From assembly GCA_019828565.1 (NCBI GenBank), contig JAHDYR010000038.1, positions 1-64,000 on the forward strand: 64,000 nt of DNA, given 5' to 3'. Of this stretch, positions 1 to 23,230 are shown one piece after another; the first letter of the stretch is position 1, and each line of letters begins with the position of its first letter. The notes beneath the pieces were generated by a model. It saw only the letters and a program-made list of their open reading frames with translations, ran no database searches and had not been told where the DNA came from. The stretch comes from Carpediemonas membranifera BICM (lineage: Eukaryota > Protista > Fornicata). Both the position numbers and the translations under genes were made by a program.

Positions 1-3000
1 GTATGCTGTGGCGCATACTTCCTACCCGGGGGCCGACTATGCCCATGCCCGACTAACAGCCGTGACCCAGCCCAGGACAAGAATGACCTAGACCACATTC
101 TAACCCACTCAGTCGACGCAATGGGCCCCGAGATCAAAGAAAATATGCGACAACTATCAACACAGCAGTTCCGCCGCCTCAACCAAGTGCTGGCATTCGC
201 CACGGTCATGACTGATGTCCAAGCATCGGACGGCATGTTCCTACGGTTTAGAGGCGCTACATTCGCGTTCGGCAAGGACCTTCATAACGCCAGAGTCATC
301 ACAGGGGAGGACGACGACACCCTACCAGCAGAGCTCATCGCGCGAGTGAGAGACTGGCTGAATGATCATTCCCAGACATACAGAGAGCTAGCAAGCGACC
401 TCGCCGCAGCAGCAGACATACCAGGCAGCTCAAGGTGCTGCGTCACATTCTCATTCACCCATGGCAATCAGAATGCAGCCCCAATTGCATTTACCCCGAA
501 CCCACTGATGACAGCAATCGTCAACGCGGACGTCGTAATCCCCCGTGCAAACAGGACAAGCTACGTTCAGTATGACAGCCCGATCGCAGCATTGGCAACA
601 TTCCCTCTCGTGTTCTGCGACGAGCGAGGATTCTCTCCAGAGTACAGCGCCAAGTTCAAGACTCTCAAGAACTGGGTCAAACACGTCCTGCACGCCAGCC
701 AATGTCGTTTTGTGCGCGCCAACCCCACGACACCAATGTTCCTGTCCATGATTCACACAGGACTCGAGCGCATCCAGGCGAGAGGATACTCAGTTACCTT
801 GAACAACGCCCAAGAAGCTGCTGGCGACGATGGCGTACTCAGCGCGAACGCTGACGGGTCGGCCCATCTCATCGCGCCGCCCACAATGCCACTATCTTAC
901 GCGTTCATGAACAACATGAGAGAGCACCTCACTGCCCTCCTTGCTCGTTTCGGCTCCCCCCATTTCTTCTGGACCTTTACCATTGACCCGTCCTACGTCA
1001 TGGATTATCTGGAAGAGCTGATCGCAGACGAAGAGTACCCACTCGACCCACCTCTAGTCATCGATGGCAGGCGCTACACGCCCAGAGACGCGCCGGTCGA
1101 CTCAGCTCGCACATGCATCGAGTACTTCTACACTATCTTCCAAAAGCTGGTAGAAGCTCTGGCCGGAACCGAATACCCAATCTGCGAATACGCCACGCGT
1201 GTTGAAGAGCAGGAGAACTCGATGCTACACGTACACACAGTCACGTGGCACAAGGGGATTGGTCAGCACACCCCAGAAGGTAACCGTCTTGACGCCAACC
1301 TCGTATCAGCAATCAACTCGATCATCTCAACTGACAGTTCAATACTGTCTGGTCGAGCCACGGTGTTCCAGACTCACACATGTAACGAACACTGCAGGAA
1401 CAACCACCACACCTGCAAACAGGGCTTCCCTGCCAAGGCTGCTACGGAATCATTCATCTCTGGAGACGGTCAGTTCGTGCCCAAGCGATCCGAGGTAGAC
1501 TCATACACCAACACGTTCTGTCCGATGGTTGCTGCACATCTTCACGGCTCAATGCACGTCTCCCCAGTCGTCTCCACCGAAATGATCATGTACATCGTCA
1601 AGTATATGACCAAGCAGCCAACGGAGGTCATTGAACAGATATCCCACGAGGTAGCATCAGTCGAACAACACCATCTCATCTACCAACAGAGGCGTCGGGT
1701 CATCGGCCCCCTCATGCTCGCCACTCTGCTCGACGGTGTATCCATATTCTCTACATCACGGGCGTTCATCAAGATTGACACAAACGTTCTACCACAGAAC
1801 AGAGTATTTGGCCCGCGGAACAACTGCATCAAGAATAAGGTCGGAGGTTGGCTCAAGTACTGCAAGCGCCCAGAAGCACTGGAGCACATCACTTACCTGA
1901 TTTACCTGACGCACTACGACACAAGGTCTGTCAAACTACCAGCATTTGAGAAGCTGCCCGATCACGAGAGAATATCCCACACTGGCGAGGACGGCACCGA
2001 ATACTTCTGGCGGATACATAAGCGCAAAGTTCCATACGCTGCATTTATTCCGATGACTACTCCACACGACGGTGACAGCCACTACTTCAACCTCCTCACA
2101 CTGTCATTCCCATGGAGAAGTGACGCTGAAATGACACATGGTTTCCACCGCCATGGAGGCCTAGCACTTACCGGCGTCGAACGCTGCTCTTACGCTGAAA
2201 AGTGTTTCGAGCTCGGACTGATTGACTCAGAAGAAGCCGACGACGACCAGATCTTCGATGTCGCTTGGCACATTCGTTTCGGGTCACTCTCAAAAGAAGG
2301 ATGCTTCGCAGTCGTCAGAGCATCCCTGGAGAAGAACGGAACAACACCAACGCTCCAAATGGTGTCAACCGTCAGAAACCCGACCCTCCGTGAAGACCTG
2401 ATCAAACATGTGCTGAAGAACACGGACAGAGCTTACATCATCAACCACGACGTTGTCAGCAGGTGGAAACAGCCAGTCGATATGGACACATCCATCGTCC
2501 TCGACGAGACACAAGAGAAGGTTTTCAAGCACTACCGAGAGAACCTCATCGCCAAGAAGCAGACTATTCTCCTACTATGTGGCCGTGCTGGCTCTGGAAA
2601 GTCTGTACTCGTGCGACACATCGCCAAGTTTACTGCAGCGAGAGGCAACCTAGTCCTCGTAACCGCATCGACTGGTGCAGCGGCTGTCAACATCGGGGGT
2701 ACAACCATCCACTCGCTCTTCAGATGGGCTGCCGAGAACCGATTCGCGGCTCCAGTCAAGGACACAGTGCCGTGGATTCTGCTCAACAACGCGACAACGC
2801 TGATCATCGATGAGGCATTCATGCTTTCCGCACCAGATATTCACGATCTCAACGAGGCGCTGTGTGTCGCGCGCAACAACACACTATCATTCGGTGGCAT
2901 CAACATGATCATCGTGGGAGACCCATACCAGCTCCCCCAGTCAACAAGCTCAAGTTTCCCGACTATCAGAGCGCGGCATTCTACCAATGGGGAGCGCACA

Positions 3001-5437
3001 GTACCAGCAAGATCACTTTAAGCGCTAACCACCGACAATCGACCGACAAGACGTTCGCGAGTATCCTCAACAGCCTTAAAACGAACAAGCTACGCGAGAA
3101 ACAGAAGGCAGCCCTTGCAAGCCGAGCAACGACTGACTGTCTCCAGTCACTCATTCAAGAGGCACTTCTCGGCGCAACCATTATCTGTGGCACACGCAAG
3201 AGACAGGCACACCTCAACTCGCTATGCATCGAAGCTCTCACCAGCTACACCAAGAGGCCAATACGCACATATGCCAACGCGGTTCTCTTCCCGCTGGCCA
3301 AGCACGAGGACATGATCGATGAACTCCCCGGCCAAGCCTCGCGCCTTTATGTACGACGCCACAGCCGAACTAGCTGTCACAGAGCATGTCCGCGACTTCG
3401 AGACACGACTCGTCGACCTCAAGATCTGCATCGGCGCCAAGGTCATGCTGACTGTGAATGACTATTACGATAAGGGCGTCGCCAACGGCTCGATCGGGGC
3501 TGTTGTGGGACTCAACAACCGTTCGGTCGACGTGAAATTCGAGCTGCCTTACAGCAACCCAGACCACCGGTTCGTACGCATCCGAGAGCAGACAGTCCCC
3601 GTCGGACCAACTGTACACCGCTACTTACCTCTCACTCTCGCATATGCCATCACTGTCCACAAGACCCAGGGTCGAACGATCCCCAACATCATCGTTGACC
3701 TGACTGACGACCGTCATCCACACGAGACACCGTTCTGGGAAACTGGTCAGCTGTACACGGCAGTATCACGCGCTCCATCGCTCGATGACGTCAGATTCTA
3801 TGGACTCCTCATGATGTCCAAAGAGCTCCAAGGCGGCGAAGAAGGCGCGACATACAGAGTCTTCGACCTGTTCATTCATAAGCTGAGATCGCCCACATTC
3901 AAGCTTCCAAGAATGTTCGACGGCAAGCAGAGCTTTTTCGCACAAAGGCTCCCACAACAAGCAGGTCACGCTGCATCAGTTCCAGTCATCGTACCCAGTT
4001 CCGTCTGATCAGCACGACACCATTGCCATATCAGGATATGCAGGCGACTACAAGCCCCCAGAATCGGTGATGAACGATCCAAAACTTGAGCCATTAGACC
4101 CACCGACCATCGATGACTTCATCCCACTCAGCGTCATTACCGAAGGCTCGGAGGTCACAGCCAATTTCGTCATCATTGACGGCATCAAGGCCGCACGAGT
4201 TCACCACGGACGCACAGCCAAGGGCGACGACACCACATCCAAGCTTAAGTTCTGGACAGCCAACACAAAGGACTGTTACCGGGTCGTCACGTCCACTCAC
4301 GTTAGCCACAAGATCACAGCACCCGCCATGAGAGAGCGTGTCATTAACCTCGACATGATACCCGATCGCGTCCATCCACGGACACTGAGACGCAAAGCAC
4401 CCCCGCCACCTCCAAGCCCTCGCAAGAGGAACAAGACGAAGCCACGCAAAGTCAGAGCCAAACCTCGCCCGGTGGCTAAGCTGCCAAAGCGGAAGCCGAA
4501 ACCATCCACCGCAAAGGTTCACACAATCCTCGACGAAAAGACGTCCTCATGCACGACTCCCGCCCGCCAACGTCAACCGCCCAATACTCACGTCTTTGCT
4601 CACTACAACATGCGGGCCACCGACAATCCAGGCGGAGGGAGTTGCGCGATATACACTGCTCGCAATCTTGATGACAGGTGGGCAGATCTCGACATACAAG
4701 ACATTCGCGATGAGGCCATCAATTTCATCGAGGAGCGGAGCGCTAATATTTTCTCCGCTGGCTGGGCGTTCGAAAGAAGTATAGCTGAGACAATCCGGAC
4801 TGGCAGAGACAGCCGGACATGGCTCAACTGCAGCCTTGTCTGGCGAGTGCTCATGAAGGCGTCAGGAATCAACTCGGGCAGTGTACTCGAATACCGCGCC
4901 AACGAGTACGATGGTCTCAGTGTCATAAGACACTCATTCGACAATGACGGCCCGATCAGATCTCAGTTCGTACACACAGTCACCCACGTATACGAACGCG
5001 GGATATACTTCATTGACGGAGACTGCGCTCACTACATGATGGCTGACCCGATCAACCCTGAACACCCCACCCTACTGCGCCGCAACAACCTCCCCGAGCA
5101 TATCGATCTCACCGGCGATGCCGAGCCAGCCGCCGAGCCTCAACATGGATCACAGATCGCCAACATAACAGCTGCATCCATAGTCACAGGAAGAACGATC
5201 TCAGCCAGACGCAACGCTGCCAGAGAGGCGCGAGCGAATCTCGAGACAGTCATCGAAATTGAGTCGCAACCCACAGCGCTACCCCACGAGTTAAGTTACG
5301 CACCTCCCAGGCATACACACCGGATCACTTCAATCGCAAGACCCAAAAGATTGGAACCCGCACCATCTGTCGACAAGCAAGGGAATCCCGTCCGAAGATC
5401 ATCAAGGCTGAAGGAGAAGGCCGAGAGAATGACATAA
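1..5437 (+). pseudogene. RepHel polyprotein A (Zn finger - HUH Rep - Pif1 helicase - OTU-like), broken by 3 single-base frameshifts (~2935, ~3332, ~3936)
   Basis: Frame 1 is open from base 1 (VCCGAYFLPGGRLCPCP). Rep motifs: HFFWTFT, EEQENSMLHVH, YIVKYMTK. Pif1 motifs: GRAGSGKS, DEAFML, GDPYQLP, HRQ, TVHKTQGRT, GQLYTAVSRA. ORFs 121-3021, 2862-3461, 3319-4008 and 4067-5437 are colinear with copy B. OTU-like NPGGGSCA...HY lies in the last piece. Confidence 0.85.
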
Positions 5438-5471
5438 TAAATAGAGAAGAGTTGCCCATTGGTTTGTCAGA

Positions 5472-5613
5472 CGGGGGGCTCGGTCGCTCCTCCGGCTTCG
5501 TTCGGCTTCGCTTCGCTCCGGGCGCTCGTCGCTACGCTCCTCCCGCCCTCCGCTACGCTACGCCTCTCTACGCCTCCGTCACTCCCTCTGCCCCCCTGCG
5601 ACCCCCCGCGGAC
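5472..5613. repeat. Conserved GC-rich structured 3' block of Helitron A
   Basis: Matches 14774-14917 with only 3 differences (2 indels, 1 substitution). Closed by CGGGGGG...CCCCCCG. Confidence 0.9.
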
Positions 5614-6426
5614 TCCGCTTCCGTCATCAAGAGTGTGTTCGGCCACATATTGGTTTTGACCTCACCTGCTGTACGCCGGACTCGAACCCAGGCCTCGTGA
5701 ATCAAAATTCAGTTCTCGACAAAGGGGAATTTCCGATCGAAACGAAAGTCCATTCCCCAGAGATACAGGCCCGCAAACGCGATTCGCGATACTCATTTCA
5801 CTTAAAGCCAAAAAAAAATCCATTTATCAATTACGCGCGAACTAAGCTCGAATAAGAACCGCCCGACAAATGCAAGGTAGCTATGGCTATGGCACTTAGA
5901 TAGCCAGAGTTTCAGCCCGATCGGTCGAATTCGCACTTTTAGTGCAAGCCAAAAAGTGCCACTCAATTCCCCAGCCGTCCACCGATCGCCCACAAAGACA
6001 GTGGTATCACACTCCCCAAAGACTCTAGCATGCATGCTATATGCCCGCTTTCATCGGGCTACCTCCGGTATATGCGGACTCGAACCTCGGAACATGGTAT
6101 GATTCCGTTTTGAATTTAAGCACACCCAGGAATTTAGCGAAATATCTAAGTGGCGTGGGAGGTCCCAGGTAACCACTGATCAAGACCGGGCAGTGCTGGA
6201 GCTCTAGCTCAACTGGAAGATATAGCACTGGGGTCAAAGTTCTCGCGTACTGACCTTTTTTGGGCACCCCAGATCTCTAGATTCGGAAGATCGAATCTCG
6301 GGTCCGATGATGGCGATCATACTGGCCCGGCCGGTAGGTAAGGGGCAGGTGTAGAGCGTAGTGTCAGAGTGCACACAGCGGTCAGGGACCAGCGTTGAAA
6401 AAAAGTCCACTTATATATATACTGTT

Positions 6427-7297
6427 TATGCTCCATCTCCGCCCCATCACCGCCAAATTCCGAGGATCGAATTCCGCGACTCAAACCCAGAGTTGCAGAC
6501 CTCAGCGTTCACAACCACCCCCGGCTAGACACGTTCTAGGCCCCATAGAGCACATTTCACTCTTCACCTCGCTGAAACCATGGTCAAGTTGATCCAGCCA
6601 CGTCGCTCAGCTTCAATCACGCAAGGCGAGCGGACAACGAGTAGACCACACCCAGATGAAGGCTGAATCGCGACATGTGCGCTCTACAGCTGTCTATAGG
6701 CCCGCACGCATACATGGGTGCGAAGTCCCAGCCCTCCAATGTCACGTATTGACGAGGTCGTAAAAGCATATCTTTACTCAATCTTTTTGACCTCAAGTCG
6801 TGGACTGCCCGGGGGTAGTTCGGGGCGCTGAACACGCTGGTGAAGTCCCCTATGCTCCATCTCTGCTCAATCACCGCCAAATTCCGAGGATCGAATTCCG
6901 CGACTCAAACCCAGAGTTGCAGACCTCAGCGTTCACAACCACCCCCGGCTAGACACGTTCTAGGCCCCATAGAGCACATTTCACTCTTCACCTCGCTGAA
7001 ACCATGGTCAAGTTGATCCAGCCACGTCGCTCAGCTTCAATCACGCAAGGCGAGCGGACAACGAGTAGACCACACCCAGATGGAGGCTGAATCGCGACAT
7101 GTGCGCTCTACAGCTGTCTATAGGCCCGCACGCATACATGGGTGCGAAGTCCCAGCCCTCAAATGTCACGTATTGACGAGGTCGTCAAAGCATATCTTTA
7201 CTCAATCTTTTGACCTCAAGTCGTGGACTGCCCGGGGGTAGTTCGGGGCGCTGAACACGCTGGTGAAGTCCCCTATGCTCCATCTCCGCCCAATCAC
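6427..7297. repeat. Tandem repeat, ~424-bp unit x2 plus the start of a third
   Basis: Unit start TATGCTCCATCTC at 6427, 6851 and 7274; copies nearly identical. Confidence 0.95.
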
Positions 7298-7451
7298 CCA
7301 CACTCAACGCCGACACCCCAATGTGTGTCCAATGGACACACGAAAATCCAAACTCCAGACCAAGAGCACGCCAGGCGCTGTCACTGCACACACGCACAGC
7401 ACTGGCCCCCCACTCCTCACAAGAGCACGCACCAGGCTCAACGCCGACACC

Positions 7452-8500
7452 AAAATGCGGACTCAGAGTCATCATTTTGGCAGGCGCTTTAAGACACATC
7501 ACCAGAACTCGACTCGCAAGCGCACGAGCGCGCTACGAAGCTCAGAAGTACTAGATAAACACCAACTGCGTCACTACAGCGAGTTTCGTCGTTGCAAAAA
7601 TGCGGACTCAGAGTCATCATTTTGGCAGGCGCTTTAAGACACATCACCAGAACTCGACTCGCAAGCGCACGAGCGCGCTACGAAGCTCAGAAGTACTAGA
7701 TAAACACCAACTGCGTCACTACAGCGAGTTTCGTCGTTGCAAAAATGCGGACTCAGAGTCATCATTTTGGCAGGCGCTTTAAGACACATCACCAGAACTC
7801 GACTCGCAAGCGCACGAGCGCGCTACGAAGCTCAGAAGTACTAGATAAACACCAACTGCGTCACTACAGCGAGTTTCGTCGTTGCAAAAATGCGGACTCA
7901 GAGTCATCATTTTGGCAGGCGCTTTAAGACACATCACCAGAACTCGACTCGCAAGCGCACGAGCGCGCTACGAAGCTCAGAAGTACTAGATAAACACCAA
8001 CTGCGTCACTACAGCGAGTTTCGTCGTTGCAAAAATGCGGACTCAGAGTCATCATTTTGGCAGGCGCTTTAAGACACATCACCAGAACTCGACTCGCAAG
8101 CGCACGAGCGCGCTACGAAGCTCAGAAGTACTAGATAAACACCAACTGCGTCACTACAGCGAGTTTCGTCGTTGCAAAAATGCGGACTCAGAGTCATCAT
8201 TTTGGCAGGCGCTTTAAGACACATCGCCAGAACTCGACTCGCAAGCGCACGAGCGCGCTACGAAGCTCAGAAGTACTAGATAAACACCAACTGCGTCACT
8301 ACAGCGAGTTTCGTCGTTGCAAAAATGCGGACTCAGAGTCATCATTTTGGCAGGCGCTTTAAGACACATCACCAGAACTCGACTCGCAAGCGCACGAGCG
8401 CGCTACGAAGCTCAGAAGTACTAGATAAACACCAACTGCGTCACTACAGCGAGTTTCGTCGTTGCAAAAATGCGGACTCAGAGTCATCATTTTGGCAGGC
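7452..8500. repeat. Tandem repeat, 145-bp unit x7 plus a partial 8th
   Basis: ATGCGGACTCAGAGTC at 7455, 7600, 7745, 7890, 8035, 8180, 8325 and 8470. One substitution seen (~8226). Confidence 0.97.
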
Positions 8501-8521
8501 ACTTTTAGGATCACGAGATTC

Positions 8522-11500
8522 ATGCCGGACTACGATATAATCAACAGTACCGATTTGGGCATTCCTATTGATGCAGGCGGCTCGGATGGCTGGTCTTCAG
8601 ACGAGCTGACCCCATCGTCTGACTTATCGGACATCTCTGATCTGATTGACGACGACTTTGTCCCAAGCGATGACGATCTTGCCATTTATCGTGTCATCGA
8701 CAGGGATTACGCACCCCCAGAGCGCCCACGGTTGATCCGCCCACCGTCCCCGCCACCGGCATCCGAGATCGATCTATTTGAGGTATCACTGACACCAATT
8801 CGCCCGAAGGTTCTGGAAAGAACCATCTGCGCCGTGTGCAAGCACATCCGCCTGCCTGGGTGCAAGCAGTGTCCATGTCCAGCCGACGACGGCGGCAGAC
8901 TAACCGACCTACAGGACGAACTCAGCTCTATGCTGACGAGGAGCATCGGTGCATTCGACGCAGAAACGGCCCAACACATCAAGGCGCTATCACACCGAGA
9001 GTTCCGCGCACTCAACCACGCACTTGCACTTGCTACGACATGGACATCCGTCCAGGCATCCAAGGGATTGTTTGTCGTGTTTAAGGGCGTCACGACCGCG
9101 TTTGGCAAGACAGACCAATATGCACAAACAATTTGTGGCGACAGTATCGCAACTGTGCCACAAAGAGCTCTCGACCTGACTCGCGAGTGGCTGACTGCCA
9201 ACTCGGCCACATTCCGAGCGATGAGATCAACTATCCAAGAAGCAACGAATGACGGAATCGAGGGACAGATCTCGTTCAGTTTCACCAACCAACGAGACCA
9301 GGGAAATCACATAGCGTTTACCCCGAACGCAGCAATGTCAAATGTTGCCAACGCAGACGCTGTCGCTACATGGTTAGACGAAGATAACGTGCGGAGAACG
9401 AAGTATGTGCAGTTTGAGTCAGACATTGCCGCTTTTGCTACATTCCCGCTCCTATTTCCAGATGGTCGCGGGTTTTCAGACCAATATCGCGCCCGATACA
9501 AGCACCTAAAGACTTGGGTACGCCACACCATCAACGCAGCACAGACTTCTTTTGTGCGCACGAACCCAGCAACAGCCACATTCCTCTCACTCGCACACAC
9601 ATCATACGAGCGCATTACCGCGAGGCGCTACACCGGAATTGTCGACGAGGCACAAACAGAGGCGGCGAATAACGGCGTACTCAGCGTGAACGCCAACGGC
9701 AACACACACAGCATCGCGCCACCGACACTACAGCTGTCACTGGGCCACATGCATGCAATTGAAGACCACCTCAAGGCAATGCTGGCACGATATGGATGTC
9801 CACACTTTTTCTGGACCTTTACAATTGACCCAGACAGTGTCATTCAATGCCTACACGAGATGGCAGCAGACCCAAGCGACCCGTTGCCACCGCCACTGTT
9901 CGAACGCCGCCACACTCCTCGCCACGCTCCTGTGGATGCCGCACACGTCTGCCTCGAGTACTTTACTACTATATTCGAAGAGCTGAAGTCAAAATTGACA
10001 GGCACAACGGAGAACCCAGGCGACTTTCCTATTTGTGAGTTTGCCACGCGAATTGAGGAGCAAGAGAACTCAATGCTTCACATCCACACAGTAACGTGGC
10101 ACAAGGGTATTGGCCAGAAGCTACCAACCGGTGATATCTTCACTGAGCGCCTCGCAAAGGCAGTAGACGCAATTGTTTCCACAGATTCATCGGTGATGTC
10201 CCCGAAATCCACTTTCTATCAGACCCACAGGTGCAACGAACACTGCAAGCGCCGCGGAACGCAGTGCAAGCAAGGTTACCCAGCCCCCGCATGCAATATC
10301 AGCCACATCAATCAGAACGGCGAATTCCTAGCCAAGCGCACTCAGTCAGACGCATTCATAACACCATTCTGTCCCCTCATCGCCGAAAACATTCTGGGCT
10401 CTATGCACGTGACTCCAGTCACATCAGCTGAGGTAATCATGTATCTGACAAAGTATATCACGAAGCCACCGGCCGAAGTGATTGAGGAAGTGTCGGCACG
10501 AGACACTCGCGACATCGAACCGCACCATCTCATCTTCCAGCAGAGGCGCCGCATCATAGGACCTCCGATGCTTGCAATCTTGCTCGAGGGGACTTCAATC
10601 TTTTCTGCATCCACGCCACACGAGAAGATTGACACCGACGTACTCCCCGAGAAGCGAATATACGGCCCTAGGAACCGATGCACCACCAACAAGGTCGGGG
10701 AGTGGACCAAGTACTACAATCGCCCCGTGGAGCTAGAACACCTCACATACGTCCAATTCAGGACGTTCTACGACACCAGGTCGAAGAAAGCGTCTGAAAT
10801 CTCGAAGTTCAAGGACGAGGAACAGATCAGATACAGTGGCGCCGATGGCACCAAATACTTCTGGCGAATATGGAAGCGCCGACGCCCAGTCACTGCATGT
10901 ATCCCCATGACGATCCCAAGTGATGGAGACAGACATTACTTCAACCTCCTAGCACTTCACAAGCCATGGAGAAGCGACGAAGAGATGCGGTCAATTGGGA
11001 CAACGAGATGCTCATATTCAGAGAAGTGTTTCGATCTCGGACTTATCGACGACGACGAGTTAGACGACGATCAGGCGTTTGACATCGCTTGGCACTTGCA
11101 TTTCAACACGAACCTGGACAACCACGGCTACATGGCTATTGTTCGAGCAGCATTAGAGAAGAACGGCGCAGAAACGACCATGCAGATGATCAACGCTGTA
11201 CAAGACGTGTCCCGCAAGTACATGTTGATGAAGCACGTGCTCAACAACACGAAACAGGCATACGTCACCAACCACGACGTTATCGCGAGGTGGGAAGCCC
11301 CAAGAAAGCTCGACACGTCGATCAATCTCGACTCAAACCAGGCCACGATCCTCAACCACTATGTGTCAAAGCTCAGATCCAAGACTCAGACAATCCTCCT
11401 TCTCATGGGACGCGCTGGTACTGGTAAGTCAGTTGTCCTCCGACACATCGCAAAGCACACCTCCGACCAGGGTCTTCTGGTGCTAGTCACTGCCGCAACA

Positions 11501-13234
11501 GGTGCAGCAGCCGTCAATATCGACGGCACAACCATTCACTCACTATTTCAGTGGACCGAGGGCCGTTTCACAGCTCCAGTGAAGGGAACCGTTCCATGGA
11601 TACTACTTAATAACGCCACTACGATCACAATAGACGAGGCGTTCACACTGTCCGCGGCTGATATTCAGGATCTCAACGATGCGCTATGCATTGCACGGAG
11701 AAACCAAGACCCATTCGGAGGAGTGAACCTCATACTCGTCGGGGACCCATATCAGCTCCCACCGGTCAACTCCCGCAGTTTCAGCAGCTATAAGAGCGCA
11801 TACCACTTCGGCTGGAGCAACTATAAGTACAGCGCCGTCATCCTATCGAACGTCCACCGCCAAGCTTCCGACCCGGCGTTCACGTACGCACTGAACGGAC
11901 TACAGAGAGGCGACATGTCCGCCAAACACGTCACGTTGTTCGCTGGCCGTGCGACGATCGACCGTTTCGACGCACTCATTCATGCAGCACTGGACGGCGC
12001 CACCATCATCTGCGGCACTCGATCCCGACAAGCGTTCCTGAACGACCAGTGTGTCCAGGCTCTCGCTCACTATGGGGGCAGAGACATGCGCGTGTACAAG
12101 AACGTCGTTCTGTTACCACTATCAATCGAAGACAGACCAATCGACGTCATTCCAGGTACCCCCGAACAGTTTACATATGACGCTGCCACTGAGCTTGCCG
12201 TGACAGAGCACATATACGACTTTGAGACCCGCCTCGTCGACACAAAGCTCTGTATTGGGGCGAGAGTAATGCTGACATCGAACGACTACTACGACAAGGG
12301 AGTCGCGAACGGATCTATCGGCACGGTCACCGCAATGGGTGCAAGGTCCGTCACCGTCGTGTTCAACCCAGAAAGTGAATCACGTCGCCGAGCACTCATC
12401 ATCCGTGATAGAACCGTCCCAGTCGGTCCAGCAATCCACAAGTACCTCCCTCTACGGTCTGCATACGCAATCACTGTCCACAAGACTCAAGGGAGAACGA
12501 TCAAGAACATCGTTGTCGATTTGTCGAACGACATATCACCCAGCGACTCCCCGTTCTGGGAGGCGGGTCAGCTATACTCAGCAATTTCGAGAGCGCCATC
12601 GTCGGATGACGTCAGGTTATACGGCCTTCTCCGTATGTCAGAGATCATACCGACACAGATATCCGTGCGCAAAGCGTGCGACCTTTACATTGAGAAGCTC
12701 CACACTCAGCGGGTGATCCTTAACCCATTGACAAACAAGCGAGGAAAGAGCAAGTTCACCTCAGTCGGCCAACCAAATCCACAGGTGTCCCTTGAGACGT
12801 TCAAGTCCCGTTGTAACTTTGTTGCGCGCACCGAAGTCGACCACATCGACATCCGGTCCTATGCCACCAGGGCAGACGCGCGCCTGAAAGCGAGCCCGAT
12901 CATTCCGCCAGATGTCAAGATCACAGACTTCGTTGAGCTTAAGCTTCTCATGGACGGGTCTAACGCTATGCAGGACGAAATGTCCCTCCCAGACGGCACT
13001 AAGGGCATCAGACCGAAGTCTCGCACTTTCGTTAACGGACGAGAAGAAAACACGAAGGCACCATGGTATGTTTCCACCACTGACGACAGGTACAGGATCA
13101 TCGGCGAGACTGTCAGCGACTCATTGCCGATAGAGCCGCCGCAAGCACGATTCATGTGGGTTGATAGCGAGTCGGAACCCGAGTCGCCCACCCAAGACGT
13201 CACAGCTTCACTGATTGTCCCAACCAGCCCCTGA
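8522..13234 (+). CDS. Helitron RepHel protein B (Zn finger, HUH Y2 Rep, Pif1 helicase)
   Basis: First ATG at 8522 (MPDYD). Motifs CAVC...CKQCPC, HFFWTFT, EEQENSMLHIH, YLTKYITK, GRAGTGKS, DEAF, GDPYQLPPV, TVHKTQG, GQLYSAISRA. Confidence 0.92.
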   Translation: MPDYDIINSTDLGIPIDAGGSDGWSSDELTPSSDLSDISDLIDDDFVPSDDDLAIYRVIDRDYAPPERPRLIRPPSPPPASEIDLFEVSLTPIRPKVLERTICAVCKHIRLPGCKQCPCPADDGGRLTDLQDELSSMLTRSIGAFDAETAQHIKALSHREFRALNHALALATTWTSVQASKGLFVVFKGVTTAFGKTDQYAQTICGDSIATVPQRALDLTREWLTANSATFRAMRSTIQEATNDGIEGQISFSFTNQRDQGNHIAFTPNAAMSNVANADAVATWLDEDNVRRTKYVQFESDIAAFATFPLLFPDGRGFSDQYRARYKHLKTWVRHTINAAQTSFVRTNPATATFLSLAHTSYERITARRYTGIVDEAQTEAANNGVLSVNANGNTHSIAPPTLQLSLGHMHAIEDHLKAMLARYGCPHFFWTFTIDPDSVIQCLHEMAADPSDPLPPPLFERRHTPRHAPVDAAHVCLEYFTTIFEELKSKLTGTTENPGDFPICEFATRIEEQENSMLHIHTVTWHKGIGQKLPTGDIFTERLAKAVDAIVSTDSSVMSPKSTFYQTHRCNEHCKRRGTQCKQGYPAPACNISHINQNGEFLAKRTQSDAFITPFCPLIAENILGSMHVTPVTSAEVIMYLTKYITKPPAEVIEEVSARDTRDIEPHHLIFQQRRRIIGPPMLAILLEGTSIFSASTPHEKIDTDVLPEKRIYGPRNRCTTNKVGEWTKYYNRPVELEHLTYVQFRTFYDTRSKKASEISKFKDEEQIRYSGADGTKYFWRIWKRRRPVTACIPMTIPSDGDRHYFNLLALHKPWRSDEEMRSIGTTRCSYSEKCFDLGLIDDDELDDDQAFDIAWHLHFNTNLDNHGYMAIVRAALEKNGAETTMQMINAVQDVSRKYMLMKHVLNNTKQAYVTNHDVIARWEAPRKLDTSINLDSNQATILNHYVSKLRSKTQTILLLMGRAGTGKSVVLRHIAKHTSDQGLLVLVTAATGAAAVNIDGTTIHSLFQWTEGRFTAPVKGTVPWILLNNATTITIDEAFTLSAADIQDLNDALCIARRNQDPFGGVNLILVGDPYQLPPVNSRSFSSYKSAYHFGWSNYKYSAVILSNVHRQASDPAFTYALNGLQRGDMSAKHVTLFAGRATIDRFDALIHAALDGATIICGTRSRQAFLNDQCVQALAHYGGRDMRVYKNVVLLPLSIEDRPIDVIPGTPEQFTYDAATELAVTEHIYDFETRLVDTKLCIGARVMLTSNDYYDKGVANGSIGTVTAMGARSVTVVFNPESESRRRALIIRDRTVPVGPAIHKYLPLRSAYAITVHKTQGRTIKNIVVDLSNDISPSDSPFWEAGQLYSAISRAPSSDDVRLYGLLRMSEIIPTQISVRKACDLYIEKLHTQRVILNPLTNKRGKSKFTSVGQPNPQVSLETFKSRCNFVARTEVDHIDIRSYATRADARLKASPIIPPDVKITDFVELKLLMDGSNAMQDEMSLPDGTKGIRPKSRTFVNGREENTKAPWYVSTTDDRYRIIGETVSDSLPIEPPQARFMWVDSESEPESPTQDVTASLIVPTSP

Positions 13235-14297
13235 CACGCCCGAGCCAGAGCATCATTCACAGACAACTGCCCCACAAGATAAGCTTCTGCAACCCACCTC
13301 CACATGTGGGCGAAGATCTACAAGGCGGACAATCATCGACGACGACGAGGAGGAATTCGCAGAACCAGCAAAGCTGTCATACAAGCAACCGAGTAAGCGA
13401 TCATCTACACGCTCTGGGACACGTTGGTCTAACCGACTAGTCACCGACGAGTCAGGAACGCGAGACATTGTCCCATGGAACATGAGGATCATTGAGTCAG
13501 CCCCAGACGGCGACTGTGCCATCCACTCGGTCAAGCAAGTATCAAAGGCATGGGGAAGTCTCTCCACTTCCCTCGTCCGTCTGCTAGTTGCGAGATTAAT
13601 CGAGGAGAATCCTCATATGTGTCCACGTGCGTGGAACAAGGCCGATAGAGACGATATGCTCGCTCGTGCACGCGACGGTAGGTTTCTGAACGATGGAATC
13701 GTCTGGCGCGCACTGATGCACGAGATGACCGAGGAATCGTCGTCCAGATTATATCAGTACACTCCAGTACTGGACGACGATCACGGTCCGAAGGCGCTAT
13801 CAGTGACTGAGTACACATTTGAGAGACAAGGTCCGCTAAGAATCTCGAACACCGGCGTTGTGACCGGAGTATTCGCTCCGGGTACATATTTCCGAAGCCA
13901 ACACTACGACTTCTGCAGGCCCATCCGCGACCAAGGTCGACAGGCATTTAGAGAGAATGACCCCATCAGAGCGATTGAGATAGATGCGCCGCCACCAGCC
14001 CAGCCAAGAAGGTCTTCTCGCACAAGCAAGCAGGTCACCAAACCCATGGAACCCCCACCAAAGCCGCGCAGAGGACGCCCACGGAAGGCACCCGCATCGC
14101 CAGTTGAAGTCGACCCAGCATTGGACTCGGATACCGCATGGAGCACGCGTAGAAGAGGTAAGAAGAAGAAGCCAGCAACCAAGACGCCACCCAAACACAA
14201 TACACCGACGGCTGAAAAGTCGTTTGACGCTCGACGCCCTCACAAGGACTCCCCACCGAACAAGTCAACACGGACCAAGCGTGCGAAATCGGATTAA
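13215..14297 (+). CDS. OTU-like cysteine protease + AT-hook; probably the frameshifted C-terminus of RepHel B
   Basis: Motifs SAPDGDCAIHS...QHYDF and PRRGRPRK. Homologous to 4067-5437. Junction falls at a C run (~13228-13231). Confidence 0.7.
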   Translation: MSQPAPDTPEPEHHSQTTAPQDKLLQPTSTCGRRSTRRTIIDDDEEEFAEPAKLSYKQPSKRSSTRSGTRWSNRLVTDESGTRDIVPWNMRIIESAPDGDCAIHSVKQVSKAWGSLSTSLVRLLVARLIEENPHMCPRAWNKADRDDMLARARDGRFLNDGIVWRALMHEMTEESSSRLYQYTPVLDDDHGPKALSVTEYTFERQGPLRISNTGVVTGVFAPGTYFRSQHYDFCRPIRDQGRQAFRENDPIRAIEIDAPPPAQPRRSSRTSKQVTKPMEPPPKPRRGRPRKAPASPVEVDPALDSDTAWSTRRRGKKKKPATKTPPKHNTPTAEKSFDARRPHKDSPPNKSTRTKRAKSD

Positions 14298-14351
14298 TGT
14301 TAAATACATACGGTTCAAGTAAAGCTCTGCGAATGCGATCACACGCCTATA

Positions 14352-14717
14352 ATGGAACAAAGTGTCCAGCATTGCAAACGACATCATACGCAACTTTCTC
14401 CACTCGATTCGAGAAGCACAAATACGATGGGACAGCATCAGCCTATCGCAAAACGGCCTCGTGGCCGTCCTAAAAAGCAAGCATTACCTGAAATCCCACC
14501 TGATGTTGGAACACAAACAGTTCCGACAGAACACGTTCCAATACGAGAAAGACGGCGCACATTGGCCACGAAATATAACAAGATCACGCTTATCCCCGAC
14601 ACTTCCTCAAGCGCTTTCAAGCCACCAACCACGATCATCCCGAAGCCCCCCAAACCAACGCCACGCAAGGAAACCGACTCGGAGCCCGTCGAACTGAGCA
14701 TAAAACTCGAGCAATAG
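14352..14717 (+). CDS. Small basic/proline-rich ORF with AT-hook
   Basis: KRPRGRPKK; stops 57 bp before the conserved 3' block. Confidence 0.35.
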   Translation: MEQSVQHCKRHHTQLSPLDSRSTNTMGQHQPIAKRPRGRPKKQALPEIPPDVGTQTVPTEHVPIRERRRTLATKYNKITLIPDTSSSAFKPPTTIIPKPPKPTPRKETDSEPVELSIKLEQ

Positions 14718-14773
14718 AACGCAGCCAATCGCCGCCCTTAATCGCCGCACGTAATCGCGCCTCCTTATCATTT

Positions 14774-14917
14774 CGGGGGGGCTCCGGTCGCTCCTCCGGC
14801 TTCGTTCGGCTTCGCTTCGCTCCGGGCGCTCGTCGCTACGCTCCTCCCGCCCTCCGCTACGCTACGCCTCTCTACGCCTCCGTCACTCTCTCTGCCCCCC
14901 TGCGACCCCCCGCGGAC
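14774..14917. repeat. Conserved GC-rich structured 3' block of Helitron B
   Basis: Near-identical to 5472-5613. Confidence 0.9.
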
Positions 14918-15966
14918 CTCCCAGCCACACACAACCAGTCACTCACCTTCAAAGCAGCATAAATACTCACCGTCGTCTCATTTCGTCATCGCACTTTATG
15001 GCTTCCCATGCAGAACTCACAATGCATCATCTGACCAAGCATAGTATGACGCCATAACGCGTTCCAGTATCACAACGTAGCATTTCGTGATCATGACGTT
15101 CATTTCAGATGAAGTCGTCATTTTTCAGAATTGCACTATCGATTACTCGATGGCCATAACTCGGATCGAAAAACGAAATAGCAAACCTTCATCTACATCT
15201 AAAACTACGTCGTTCTATACCTACACATTCTTTCCATCATTCGTTTGAGAGGGTTTTTTTTGGTGTCAAAAAATCTTGTATTTAGCGAAAAATTAGTAGC
15301 TGCCTCGACCGCACCCTATGCCACTAAGAAGCGTGGCCAGTTGCTAAGAGAACGCATGGCCCAGTCCCGAGTTCTGCGCCCCCGACCATGAGCTTCCCGA
15401 CACCCACACCCAACCCGTCGTTAATTAATTTTCGCCATCAACCCCCGCCATCAAGCCCACATAGGTTGGTGCATGCGTGTATGAGCCGGCTTGCGCTAGT
15501 CTCCTCCACGTCGTCTGGTCGGGTCCCCCCCGGAGTATGACTCTTACCGACTGTCATAAATAACGGAGATTTAAGAATTATAAAAAGTTAGCTCGGAATT
15601 GATATGTCGAAGGGTAGGGACATATCGTGGTGTATTTGCGTGGCTCTGCGTACTCTCCTCGTCGCGTGAGTCGCCCAAGGAGGTCGGGCAGACCCCCCAA
15701 AACGGCTACTCAGAACTTTACGACGAATAGAGATAGCCCAGGTCTGACAAATGACTCCGGGGGGTATTCTGGGGTAAGTAAGGAGAATCTGGAATTACAT
15801 CTGATATCCACTAAATATTCGGCGAGATATGAAGGTCGAGTCGAAATGTTCACTTGCTGTATAGTTAATTACCTTACCTTACCTTACGCTAATCCGTCGG
15901 CCCAGGCTACACCGACGGGCGGCGAGCCGGGTCATCCCAGAGGACGTCCGTGACATCCTCACCACG

Positions 15967-17741
15967 GTGGCGGACGCTGTCGTTGACCCGTCTAAGGTCC
16001 CTCCCCCGGCCCCGAACGTGGCCACCAGCGCCAAGGCTGTGGCGAGGCGAGTCCGCACACGCGACACGGTGGCGGAGTTCTCCGCTGGCCAGGCCATGGT
16101 GGGCCGCGCAGATGCTCTCACACTGCTAGGTTTCCCACAGGGCTGGGTCGAGCGGATCGAAGCGGAGGGGGGCCTTCCCCTCAATACCCCCACCCCCCCA
16201 CCAGCTCCTCCCTTACCGGCGACTCCTCGGGATCCCGATCGACCGAGAGTGGCCGCCCTCAACGCGGAGCTCCTCCAGCAGGGTGCGGCTTCGCTGCGTG
16301 AGGTGCCAAAGGGTCACCTGGTCAAGCTCTTCCCGGTGGCCAAGTCCTCGGGAAAGGACCGCGCGGTGCCGACTTCACCGAGGCAAACCTCCACATGCCT
16401 CTGGAGCCGTTCGCCTATGAACGCTTTCCAGCTCTGCTGGCGGCTTCATATTCGTGGGGCGCCACGGTGGACGCGAAGTCTGGCTACTTCCAGCTGCCGA
16501 TTGCCCTGCGGGACCGGGACTTTGTCTACTGGTTGGCGACCAACGCGGAGGGTGAGACGGTTCACTTGGGCCTGGACGTCCTCGCCATGGGGCTGACCTC
16601 CGCTACGAAGGAATATAGCCGCATCTCCCACTACCTGGCCGGGGCCATGAGGCGCCTCGGCTTCCCAGCGGCCCCCTACTTAGACGACGGCGCTTGCCTG
16701 GGCAGGACGAAGGCAGAGGCGGCCCTATGCGTGGCGGTGTGGGTGTCCCTCCTGGAGGCGGTCGGCATATTCGTGTCTTGGGACAAGTCTGACCTTACCC
16801 CCTCTCGGTCGATCGTCTTCCGTGGTCTCCTGCTGGATCTCCAACAGCACCAGGTGCGACTGCCGGAGGACAAGTGCCACGACATCAGCGGAGCCCTCAG
16901 CCAGTGGGCGCAGACGGGCGCTACCAGCACCAGGAGGGCCCTATCATACGTGGGCAAGGTCGAGTTTGCGTACAACGCGGTTGTGCAGGCTCGTTGGCTC
17001 ATAAGCAAGGCGCGCCGTAATGTGCTGGCGACCGAGAAGGCCGGCCGGGACACCGTCCACTTCACCACCGAGGCCAGGCAGGACCTCAGGCGGCTGGCGG
17101 CGTTCGTGAAGGCGAACCGGGGTCGCCCAATGGTGGCGAGACCAACGTCACTCACGATTGTCACCGACGCCTGCACGACGGGTATGGGAGCAGCAACGCT
17201 CGATGAGAACGGCGACGTGGTCGGTACAATTGCTGAGGACATTCTCCCGGATGAACTCATTGCCCAGAGTGAAATCCGGGCCGTGCACACCGCTCTCCAG
17301 ACGTTTGATCCCCCAAGGTCGACATCGGTCGTCATCCTGACGGATAACGCGGTAACGTACTCCGTCCTGCGGAACTTCAAATGCGCACCCTCGGTGGCGG
17401 AGATGAGCTCACCAATATTCGATCTAGTCACAGATCGGGACTGGGATGTGTTACCCCTATACATCCAGACCGACCTGAATACGGTCGCGGATGAGCTCTC
17501 GCGCGACACGTCAATCCAGGGTCACCTCCTGGAGGGAGTGAGAGCGTGGGTGCCGAGGAGTGCGGAGTCGCTCCAGATTGATCACCGGACTCCATTCTCA
17601 TTCTCTGATCCGTTCGCCACCCCCGTCTTCGACCGCCCAGAGGTTGCGGACAGAGGCCCAAAACCATGGGCTGGTTGGTCCAGAAAGCTCCTGATGGGCT
17701 GGACGGGCTGCCTCCCTCCACGACGTGGAGTGCCCGAGTGA
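15967..17741 (+). pseudogene. DIRS-type reverse transcriptase-RNase H (frameshift ~16365)
   Basis: LFPVAKSSGKDRAV/ADF, DAKSGYFQLP, LAMGL, YLDD; RNase H TDAC, SEIRAV, TDN, NTVADELSR. Confidence 0.9.
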
Positions 17742-19164
17742 TCCCAGGGCTCTTTCAGACGAGGGCGACAGGGCGGAGGACGATGTCGTCGTCCGCGCAT
17801 ACGCCGGGCTGGCTGATCAGGCACAGGCCAGAGCGCCCATCGCGGTGGTCACCGTCCCGGGTCTGGGTAAGAAGGGTATCCCCAACGGTTCCGTCGATGA
17901 CCAGGTCCACCACTGGCTGGCGTCCCCAGGCCCGATGAGGCCCAAGTCGATCACTTTCAGCATGCCCACTACGACATCATACCTGCCGGTCTGGTGGCCG
18001 CTGCTCCGGGACCTACAGGTGACGGTTGACGGAGACCGAGTCACCCTCCATTCCCCTACGCCAGAGAGTGACACGCTGATTGCTCGATCCCTTGTCCAAG
18101 AGGCGGCCGCGACTCGTCAGACACAGGACATCACCAGCCTGCCGGCACTTGTAGGCGAGCAGGGGGCGCAGGAGGCCGACACCAGGAACTCTGTTCGGTC
18201 GGCCCTCGAAGTTCTTCGGAATGGTAGAGCCGCGGGCGCGTCCCAGGTCGAGCGCTTGGCCGCAGAAGCTGTGGAGCAGACACTCTCCAGCCGGAAGGAG
18301 GCGATCACAACGGCCTGGAACAAGTGGTACGCCTTCTGTATCGCGATGTCTCACCCTGCCACAGTGTTCGACCAGACAGCAGCAATCGCCTTCCACCGCT
18401 GGGTGACACGAGACTGCCCGACACGGCGAGTCAATAGCGCCACGGCGAAGACATACGCAGGAACCCTGTCATCTCTACTCTGCACCGACCGGGAGGCCCT
18501 GGCGAACAATGTCACGAGAGCGGTGATTCGCAACTTTCATCGTGAGGCCAATAGGATGGCGGCTACGGCCAAGCGACACGCGGTGCCGGTGAGTGGGCAG
18601 CAGCTGACGTTCTTGTGCACGGAGCTGGCGAATGCTTCCGCCATGAACGCAAGAGTACGCGCCATGGGTGTTGTGCTGCTTTGCTTCCTCACTGGTGCAC
18701 GGGCCAACGAAGCTAACGTGACGTTCAGGCAGATTTCCACACTGGCACGAGAAGAAGTCATCTCCATCAAGATACACCAGTACAAGACAGACGGATCCGC
18801 AAACGCAAGACCTGGCAACCCGGCACCACTTGCTGTTCGCCCAGTGGACATCTATCTGAGGACATATCCTCAATTGGTGAAGACTGCTTTCACCAACCTC
18901 CTCAGACGCTCAGTGGAGCACTATTCCGCGATCGGACAACCAGCTTGCGCTGTTACACCAGTTTTCCCTTTCCTTCCCGGAAGATTCACGCCCATTCGGT
19001 CATCGCTTTATCGCTCCCACGATCACGACTGAACTGAGTCGAATCCCCGAACTCGCCGGCCTGACGGGACACAGCGGCAGGATCGGACAGGTTGCCTGTC
19101 AACTCTCGCAGGCGAGAACCACAGCCGAGATTAACGAGTGGTTTGGCTGGCTAGGACATGATAC
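17725..19164 (+). pseudogene. Tyrosine recombinase, 5' part (with a degenerate MT-like N-terminal segment)
   Basis: WWPLL (DIRS MT-like) and LTGARANE (catalytic R). After a frameshift at ~18970-19020: LTGHSGRIG (HxxR) and EWFGWLGHD. Confidence 0.85.
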
Positions 19165-19283
19165 TGTGCTTGGTTTGGCCTTGAATGGAACTTTCCAATT
19201 AATGGATGAGAACTGATTTACTCCTGGAAACCGCAGTGGTGAAAATGGTCAAAAACCAAAACCTTAAACTGCGCCTCACCACA
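19165..19283 (-). repeat. 3' LTR
   Basis: TGTGCTTGG...CTCACCACA; matches 23108-23226. Confidence 0.96.
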
Positions 19284-19295
19284 CTACCCTCTCTA

Positions 19296-22200: not shown

Positions 22201-22544
22201 TCGAAGAGACGCAGGTGCATCTCCTCGGCAAGCGCTGGAGGGATGAAGTTAAGGCTGGCACCGGTATCAAGCAAGGCGGTGCGAGGGACGTGGTCAGAGA
22301 AATGGAGGCTCACATGAGGGCTGCTGTTGTTGGTGTGGGCGGCCAACTTAGCAGTGAGGTTGAGCGCTTGGCGACGGATGCCATGCGCGAAGAAGCCGGG
22401 GTGATCCCGGTGAGGGCACTCGGGCCGTACATGACCTGTGAGGCCACAACCGTGGCAGATGAGCTCCGACTTCGGCCGGCGATCGACGGTAGGGGCGGTC
22501 GGCTCAGCCTTGGCCTTGATGGGCGGAGGGCGCCGGGGCGGCAT
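19296..22544 (-). CDS. pol: Gypsy pol: CCHC knuckle, protease, RT, RNase H, integrase, chromodomain
   Basis: CHGCGLTGHVRPEC, LLDTGA, YLDD, TDAS, H-H-CPVC, DFIGP/SDQG/IERRN, EYTVEDIIDHR...VRWAGYGPDDDTWLP. Confidence 0.96.
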   Translation of the reverse strand: MPPRRPPPIKAKAEPTAPTVDRRPKSELICHGCGLTGHVRPECPHRDHPGFFAHGIRRQALNLTAKLAAHTNNSSPHVSLHFSDHVPRTALLDTGASLNFIPPALAEEMHLRLFEAHVPLETANGTITAEYTTRPVTITLQLERPVEVTAEFFVLPSAGELIIGVPTIRAVGLLPDLLAPRAEAEFVEATPVPLPDDRAPAEIAHPLIQDYPDLFASELPGVIGVEPFHIDLSDTDVAPFPPRRMSPALAEAVKAEVDGLLARGIIQPSTSPFASPAFTVPKRGGKRRMVIDYRRLNEKTVPLQYPLSNPAELHRRLAGHNYYTTIDLVSGYHQVPVDPASRPLTAFATPAGLFEFCRLPFGLRCAPSFFQRMMMSVLNGLVGRICEVYLDDVIIHGDTQEELDRNTRAVFDRLQQHQFRLGRDKCQFAKTEVEYVGHLISKKGIRTSPERVAAIVAMKPPSSVAAVRSFTGMTNYLREFIPNYASVLAPIVDLTKAKVPFVWGKAQQQAFEEVKRLIMRRPILAYPDYSRTLIVRTDASTAGCGGVLLQEKDGEEQVIAYTSHRFTEAEQRWSTIEQELFGVFHAIISFEHFILGHPFVVETDHRNLTYLESTTTPKLVRWRLRLSEYDFTVRHIAGVNNEVADCLSRCLTIRSQRVASPVDITHQVRQLFGKCHNARVGHMGTRITTDRIAAQLPSFARKAIEKHVKPLVRTCPVCQLTRQRAKVSVDLPRQPTMAPYPMHTWAVDFIGPFPEEHGFRHILAAVDCFSRFVELVPTPDCTAQSAVTAIMQLVGRYGCPAHIRSDQGPHFTAHLFAQLSRILNIQHDFTLPYHHQYNGIIERRNKEVNRHLRAAMNELTDDLADWVACLPLVQRTLNCTPCAATGNIPPANIMFGNLTDTDRVLLHNPVEGVGDVALYYDNLLEAQRQLVKAVPVPKPRPVTQTTFTVGQAVVVTRPDNARGPSRLSPIYMGPYTVASLDGTLATLTNLRTRAEETYDLRRLVPFLGDYTPDDLTAFAAAGEQEYTVEDIIDHRSGRTKTRFRFRVRWAGYGPDDDTWLPYAEVRDLEALDRYLSKTGIQL

Positions 22545-23094: not shown

Positions 23095-23107
23095 GTAGTA
23101 TCGATAC

Positions 23108-23226
23108 TGTGCTTGGTTTGGCCTTGAAGGGAACTTTCCAATTAATGGATGAGAACTGATTTACTCCTGGAAACCGCAGTGGTGAAAATGGTCAAAAACC
23201 AAAACCTTAAACTGCGCCTCACCACA
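23108..23226 (-). repeat. 5' LTR
   Basis: 118/119 identical to 19165-19283. Confidence 0.96.
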
Positions 23227-23230
23227 ATAC

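Follow-up and report, generated by a model that had tools for sequence, protein, structure and literature searches.

The window considered here, a continuous stretch of 64,000 nucleotides from the genome of Carpediemonas membranifera, contains two mobile elements, A and B, that both encode proteins combining Helitron_like_N and PIF1 (RepHel) and that share a short noncoding block downstream of their coding DNA. In element A, the last open reading frame (ORF) of the plus strand (4067-5437; 456 aa), for which a protein homologue search found no homologues, stops 34 nt before the block; this first copy spans 5469-5618 on the plus strand with shared edges included and has a core of 142 nt at 5472-5613. 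Element B carries its RepHel ORF (Helitron_like_N and PIF1) at 8462-13234 of the plus strand; the encoded protein is 100% identical to an NCBI entry from Carpediemonas membranifera. The stop codon of a further ORF, 14352-14717, lies 57 nt before the second copy, which sequence comparison places at 14774-14917 of the same strand (144 nt). The two copies differ in three places: a run of G6 or G7, CTC versus CTCC, and a single C/T substitution. Their flanks cannot be aligned with each other, and even the best-matching segments of RepHel coding DNA in elements A and B reach no more than 72-85% identity. The first-pass annotation had described a block set shortly after the last stop codon and shared, with three differences, by two diverged elements; its coordinates, its count of differences, and this placement are all borne out.

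Each copy is followed by a noncoding plus-strand tail, at 5619-6428 in element A, where it ends ...ACTGTTTA at 6428, and at 14918-15868 in element B, where it ends ...GTATAGTTAA. Directly after this true 3′ end of element B stands an interstitial telomere tract, (TTACC)3 TTAC, at 15869-15887 of the plus strand. The tract gives way (15888-19000) to a retroelement with ORFs at 16395-17741 and 17725-19032, so that the innermost member of the stack adjoins another mobile element. On the 5′ side of element B lie two plus-strand units of a 424-bp repeat (6427-7298), 98% identical to arrays in the non-autonomous elements of a further family, C, and a 145-bp repeat array (7452-8505, plus strand) that stops just before the RepHel start.

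Several other features of the window may be recorded. Minus-strand fragments of the element A tail, at 5660-5730 and 6070-6100, resemble the T-arm and acceptor of a tRNA (GGTTCGAGTCCGGC-type); ARAGORN finds no tRNA in the window or in 18 loci, and Rfam gives no match to a known RNA family in 1-16500 at E values up to 1. A 128-nt direct repeat (19160-19287 and 23103-23230; 98% identical) flanks a minus-strand ORF of 1082 aa at 19296-22544, and its two copies may be the terminal repeats of another element. Farther on, a minus-strand ORF of 3044 aa (33166-42300) contains fourteen nearly identical tandem units of 594 bp, with the repeats at 33899-41726 showing a strongly negative AT skew (-0.38 to -0.40), and looks like the gene of a giant repeat protein.

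Anatomy and folding of the block

At its left boundary, the block opens with a C and a run of six or seven G (5472-5478, plus strand), the length of which varies among copies. Toward its right end stands a C6-N5-C6 motif (5583-5607, plus strand), read on the minus strand as G6-N5-G6-N4-G3, after which the block closes with GCGGAC(TCCGC). Bracketing by CGGGGGG and CCCCCCG, as originally reported, is present. In families C, D, and E, the C6-N5-C6 motif is duplicated just upstream of the block, and the immediate edges of copy 1, AGAC in the 4 nt before it and TCCGC in the 5 nt after it, recur in the same three families. The body that follows the G run is made up of about 13 degenerate repeats of 10-11 nt, with autocorrelation peaks at 10 nt (z 3.5) and 21 nt (z 3.6), an array with a period of about 10.5 bp in which Tandem Repeats Finder reports three short period-10 arrays. 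Within it, four octamers of the form CGCTWCGC begin at 5509, 5530, 5551, and 5556 (5509-5563, plus strand), with spacings of 21, 21, and 5 nt; the distance separating three of them thus corresponds to two helical turns. The octamer occurs eight times in the 64-kb window, all within the two block copies, which have four each.

The block has a GC content of 73% and contains 23 CpG, in elements of about 53% GC. Its sense strand consists of 5% A and 70% pyrimidine, a strand asymmetry in the top 0.2% of the window, and the 25-mer of the C6-N5-C6 motif has the highest absolute G4Hunter score (2.24) of the 25-mers in 1-16000. A canonical G-quadruplex was rejected, there being only three short-looped runs of three or more G, with the next G3 run some 35 nt away. 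Coding potential was likewise rejected: homopolymer indels shift the frame between copies, and the three sense frames are open because A is rare.

According to the initial proposal, the block would act as a folded single strand, with inner CCGG/CCGG and GGGCG/CGCCC stems inside the outer G and C runs and with GNA mini-hairpins on the minus strand. The energy models lend it no support. Measured against dinucleotide-preserving shuffles, both the minus-strand DNA (z = +2.31) and the plus-strand DNA (z = +2.10) fold more weakly than the controls, with 198-199 of 200 shuffles folding at least as well as the block on either DNA strand, and the sense RNA gives z = +1.75. Because both strands fold worse than shuffles, the inner and the long-range stems amount to no more than chance. 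The GNA mini-hairpins lie outside the reach of the model, which scores GCGAAGC at +0.2 kcal/mol and is unable to judge such hairpins either way; the high stability of d(GCGNAGC) mini-hairpins is itself established. No conserved stem-loop is predicted in the block, and the junctions of the elements lie elsewhere.

The five minus-strand heptamers were found as initially counted (GCGAAGC twice, GCGTAGC three times); these GCG(A/T)AGC heptamers are the octamers read on the opposite strand, as GCGWAGCG. Five per block compares with an expected mean of 0.2, a count reached by none of 5000 dinucleotide-preserving shuffles. Among the 42 copies of the block found in the genome, the five sites are intact in 41, 39, 28, 42, and 29, one heptamer being destroyed in 14 copies and another weakened in 13. 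Of five substitution events in the 127-nt core, three lie inside heptamers, which occupy about a quarter of it; one heptamer reads GCGAAGC or GCGGAGC because a common T/C polymorphism affects its free N. The heptamers are a by-product of the 10-bp repeat unit.

Distribution, families, and true ends

The Carpediemonas membranifera genome searched comprises 24,237,836 bases in 69 contigs. A 22-mer of the block that is invariant, being kept in all 42 copies, occurs 42 times genome-wide, on 9 contigs. All of the copies lie within stacks of RepHel elements arranged head to tail, with a single polarity, at chromosome ends; there are no solo copies among the 42. Their strand follows the stacks, plus at contig starts and minus at contig ends, with a single exception on contig C1. 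In the genome search, RepHel homologues are confined to contigs with the block; the stacks on contigs C1, C6, C11, and C3 were examined as 3-kb loci only. The view that a discrete, noncoding, orientation-fixed block is common, almost without change, to otherwise diverged RepHel families stands, with 42 of 42 copies accompanying RepHel elements. An independent SINE or MITE is ruled out since the block never occurs apart from RepHel elements (0 of 42 copies outside their architecture).

On contig C1, family-D blocks face away from each other, at 898649, 914374, and 919315 on the minus strand and at 939123 on the plus strand. RepHel fragments lie between the opposed blocks, at 916787-930945, and the arrangement could be due to two chromosome ends having fused head to head long ago or to an assembly misjoin.

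The boundaries of the block coincide or nest in three unrelated upstream and five downstream contexts. The only odd upstream context is produced by a Ty3/gypsy insertion into the G run of a copy on contig C31. This element, a chromovirus on the minus strand at about 2205-8152 of locus L043 (contig C31:40001-50000), encodes a gag zinc knuckle, reverse transcriptase, integrase, and a chromodomain, and GGGG is present on either side of the insertion in the left-edge G run.

Telomere repeats in this genome are of the form (TTACC)n. Among the runs listed, those of at least 30 nt are found at contig termini only (n = 4) and always with C-strand polarity, and about 500 bp of (TTACC)n opens contigs C37 and C31. 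These terminal arrays (L036, 1-530, on contig C37; L039, 90-540, on contig C31) mix perfect (TTACC)n with TTTACC, TTTTACC, and CTTTAC, and their outermost irregular repeats may represent long-read noise or true repeat heterogeneity. With RepHel, one polarity, a constant right end followed by telomere repeats, and a variable left end, the host elements match telomere-capping Helitron-like elements. In published RNA-seq, expression of the RepHel genes was not found (PMC8516963).

Comparison of the copies distinguishes five families, A-E, by the sequence that follows the block. The block lies directly downstream of a stop codon in all coding families, 34-97 nt from the last stop to its start. In all 42 copies, a family-specific tail without sizeable ORFs then leads over 497-1090 bp to a constant end. 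The tail measures 815 bp in family A, 951 bp in family B, 796-803 bp in family C (ending ...CCGCAATACCTTACCATAAC), about 1090 bp in family D, with an end identical to that of family C, and 497 bp in family E (ending ...ATATCTTC). The family-A tail is present in three copies genome-wide, each behind a block. Of the family-C termini (n = 34), 33 lie at 796-803 bp from a block, and TTA, TTAC, or (TTACC)n comes after all 34, with varied sequence beyond it. The ends of families B, C, and E adjoin TTA, TTAC, or (TTACC)2-5; those of family A have no clear telomere tract. Beyond the tract, copies differ, continuing into another position of the 424-bp repeat, the interior of a RepHel gene (e.g. residue ~1040), or unrelated DNA. 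The sequence GGTTCGAATCCCTCCTGGCACA follows several family-C junctions.

The block is therefore internal and not an end of the element. Its first description as an end block fails because same-family homology runs on beyond it, for 815 bp in element A (to 6428) and for 951 bp in element B (to 15868), and a role as terminus, nick site, or termination site fares no better, since every family continues for another 0.5-1.1 kb before reaching the constant end that adjoins telomere repeats. The features of a Helitron right terminal sequence are likewise missing: the block is not at the 3′ end, and there is no hairpin 10-12 nt before a CTRR. That no hairpin with CTRR follows the block had been correctly observed. 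Continuation of the elements far past the block to ordinary CTRR ends had been named as an outcome that would speak against a signal at this site; the continuation is real, but the ends reached are telomere-like and not of the CTRR type. A strong hairpin near the real end is found in family C only (9 bp, 27 nt from the terminus ...CCATAAC; z = -2.46). A similarity between the right edge of the block and the family-C terminus was dismissed as not significant (P = 0.42), and an asymmetric-repeat search of one full-length non-autonomous element found no terminal inverted repeats of at least 14 nt.

Small non-autonomous derivatives retain the block, and in family E the copies are only about 1 kb apart. 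Fragments without the block also persist in the stacks, namely a 350-bp piece of the B tail, 822-bp units, and a 24-nt fragment of C. The 822-bp units, on contig C38 (28700-31181; L034/L035), are the last 822 bp of the family-B tail (15052-15873 in the window) repeated three times in tandem without the block, with TTAATTACC joined to ATAACGCG at their junction. A suspected loss of block-less truncated family-C copies (a gap from 43 bp to 1449 bp) was set aside as not significant, with about 14 independent junction types and with block-less B and C fragments in existence.

Relatives outside this genome are distant. Two conserved patterns of the block gave no matches in metagenomes, and the nearest RepHel relatives are only 24% identical. 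One of these, a 1365-aa RepHel 24% identical to that of element B, is encoded by L047, an ENA metagenome contig of 6609 bp and 30% GC. A GGGGGAC-GAA-GTCCCCC hairpin followed by CTAG, some 90-120 nt after its stop codon, gives this contig a textbook Helitron 3′ end; a JGI contig of similar size (6588 bp) encodes a related protein.

Exchange between families and competing readings

Of all noncoding sequence, only the block, at 94-98% identity, is similar in every pair of families A-E. Identity between RepHel proteins is 55% for A and B and 33-37% for B and C or D. The same block haplotype can occur in two families (B and E, B and C), three distinct haplotypes are present among B copies whose remaining sequence is 97-99% alike, and all four gametes are seen at two pairs of sites in the block, whose uniformity is ascribed to exchange between families at this point. 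Upstream of the block, families C, D, and E have their sequence in common, and they diverge 5-8 nt after it, so that the block behaves as a recombination joint. These patterns show the elements to be mosaics, with the block as the fixed joint of between-family exchange. Such exchange does not by itself explain why place and orientation have been retained in every lineage. Direct signs of purifying selection are absent, since the family-C block, with a nucleotide diversity of 0.04-0.05, is at least as variable as its flanks, and the motifs show no depletion of substitutions.

How much function should be attributed to such a block is the point on which the readings divide. It may be a neutral, leftover island of homology that arose from a 10-bp minisatellite, has no function, and is kept uniform only as the single place at which diverged subtelomeric elements, clustered physically, are still capable of gene conversion, possibly GC-biased. 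Cross-family haplotypes and four-gamete site pairs are what such a process would leave behind, family-C diversity is as high in the block as around it, the 73% GC and 23 CpG of the block stand out from elements of about 53% GC, and other modules cross families as well, among them the 424-bp repeat at 98%. Harder to reconcile with neutrality are the constant position and orientation of the block, which no lineage lacks, boundaries that are the same or nested in all contexts, a 22-mer unchanged in 42 of 42 copies, and the retention of the block by small non-autonomous derivatives, including the family-E copies; a functionless island is accordingly possible but on the whole doubtful. A different history would see in the block a right-terminal signal, ancestral or auxiliary: an expanded form of the GC hairpin found some 100 nt past the RepHel stop codon in canonical Helitrons, to which read-through (3′ transduction) later added the family tails that now supply the telomere-like ends. 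In its favor, the families have unrelated tails, the position after the stop codon matches that of the canonical relative on L047, and the block is framed by G-run and C-run arms; four of the five families have an 11-nt palindrome, GCGGACTCCGC, at its right edge, and the B tail contains an internal GACCCCCCAAAA motif at -182, like the family-C terminus. With none of the 42 copies ending at or near the block, a right edge not significantly similar to the real terminus (P = 0.42), and a closing stem that spans about 125 nt in a fold no better than chance, this history is unlikely.

Two further readings place function in the minus strand or in the host. Were the minus strand to fold as single-stranded DNA, GNA mini-hairpins and long-range G/C closure might constitute an origin, a terminator, or a second-strand priming signal. 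This would agree with the enrichment of GCGWAGC (5 against 0.2 expected; 0 of 5000 shuffles), with two heptamer sites kept in 41 and 42 of the 42 copies, and with the common T/C polymorphism falling on the free N, and d(GCGNAGC) hairpins are invisible to the energy model. The block is not terminal, however, its heptamers are a by-product of the 10-bp unit, one site is lost in 14 of 42 copies and another weakened in 13, three of five substitution events fall in heptamers, and Watson-Crick folding is worse than in shuffles, all of which leave such a folded signal quite improbable. Very little probability is likewise given to a host-facing element acting on transcription or replication, either a 3′-end, terminator, or insulator signal close behind the ORF or a G-rich structure (G4 or R-loop) in the way of helicases or polymerases heading for the telomere. 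Against it stand the AT-rich character of promoters and poly(A) signals in better-studied metamonads and the three short-looped runs of G3 or longer, which do not make a canonical G4. A host-facing role would nevertheless suit the position of the block immediately 3′ of the stop codon in all coding families, its extreme strand asymmetry (top 0.2% of the window), and the top-scoring G4Hunter 25-mer within it. For the telomeric Helitrons of Paramecium, G4-rich repeats have been considered alongside the Pif1 helicase (PMC13085455).

A candidate recognition module

As the block lies 0.5-1.1 kb inside each element, the likeliest reading is of a shared recognition module rather than a site of cutting or termination. 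Tentatively, and at somewhat less than an even chance, we favor a protein-recognition module akin to a viral common region and kept uniform by recombination between families, a function that we infer. It would be a cis module beside the 3′ end of the coding region in telomere-stacking Helitron-like elements. Recombination or gene conversion between families, partly shown by the exchanges described above, would keep the block uniform and swap the sequences on either side, and a protein that every family shares would bind to the block or be loaded there. This protein could be RepHel itself, the accessory part at the C-terminus of RepHel, or a host factor. The block would thereby mark DNA as the element's own, with joining to telomere repeats occurring at the distant terminus and nicking or termination occurring away from the block.

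The poor base-paired structure of the block makes it a better fit to a protein-binding site than to a hairpin. Also counting for a recognition module are the confinement of all 42 copies to RepHel stacks, the fixed boundaries, the phasing at 10 and 21 nt, and the restriction of the octamer to the block within the 64-kb window. Counting against it are the distance from the junction, the published RNA-seq result on the RepHel genes, the persistence of block-less truncated copies, motif substitutions that are not depleted, and the diversity within family C; moreover, one site common to three deeply diverged RepHel lineages would be unusual for HUH Rep/iteron systems. A more far-reaching version can be imagined, although the chances are well against it: the block may be the specificity determinant, an origin-like common region, of a telomere-capping rolling-circle guild, in which all RepHel lineages and their ORF-less derivatives would be recognized via one phased-repeat platform, and recombination at this platform would reshuffle coding modules and telomere-targeting tails.

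Comparison with known systems illustrates what is shared and what is particular. In geminiviruses and nanoviruses, the common region is noncoding, measures about 150-200 nt, and combines Rep-binding iterons with the origin stem-loop. Like it, the block is a near-identical noncoding segment with sharp boundaries and short repeats, kept uniform by recombination among otherwise unrelated DNAs that depend on an HUH Rep. Unlike it, the block lacks an origin stem-loop and a nick site resembling the nonanucleotide, is shared by three diverged RepHel lineages, and resides in linear chromosomal elements. The sso cassettes of rolling-circle plasmids and the complementary-strand origins of single-stranded DNA phages are orientation-dependent, are exchanged between replicons, and have been reported to contain GNA-type hairpin motifs. 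The block resembles them as an orientation-dependent noncoding cassette exchanged between replicons, but sso are strongly folded and the block folds worse than shuffles. A canonical Helitron right terminus likewise follows soon after the RepHel stop codon and has complementary G and C runs, but the block is not terminal, lacks CTRR, and would enclose a "loop" of 125 nt, and the real ends, 0.5-1.1 kb further on, are telomere-like. The earlier impression that the block is closer to a replicon cassette than to a Helitron end looks right.

The closest parallel for the elements themselves is provided by the telomere-capping Helitrons of Paramecium aurelia (Arnaiz et al., BMC Biol 2026, PMC13085455). 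The portions of that account used here describe RepHel elements stacked with a single polarity at chromosome ends, short telomere tracts invariably coming after the right end, satellites within the elements, and more ORF-less derivatives than autonomous copies, all as in Carpediemonas. In Carpediemonas, by contrast, the termini differ by family and the shared piece is internal; the same portions describe no near-identical internal module shared across families for Paramecium (PMC13085455).

How a telomere-capping RepHel recognizes element DNA and attaches it to telomeres is the question on which the block bears. To date, telomere-capping Helitrons have been described in print from a single organism, Paramecium (2026; PMC13085455). 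Because the termini in Carpediemonas differ by family and one internal module is common to all, the block is the obvious first candidate for a cis-acting recognition site. If the more far-reaching version given above holds, recognition and joining would, for the first time in a Helitron-type system, be about 1 kb apart, and the block would offer a way to test how chromosome ends are built by DNA transposons. If the block is only a gene-conversion island, it would still provide a clean case of concerted evolution within about 150 bp, between subtelomeric elements that are otherwise unalignable. The block also shows the telomere-stacking elements of Carpediemonas to evolve as mosaics with a fixed point of joining.
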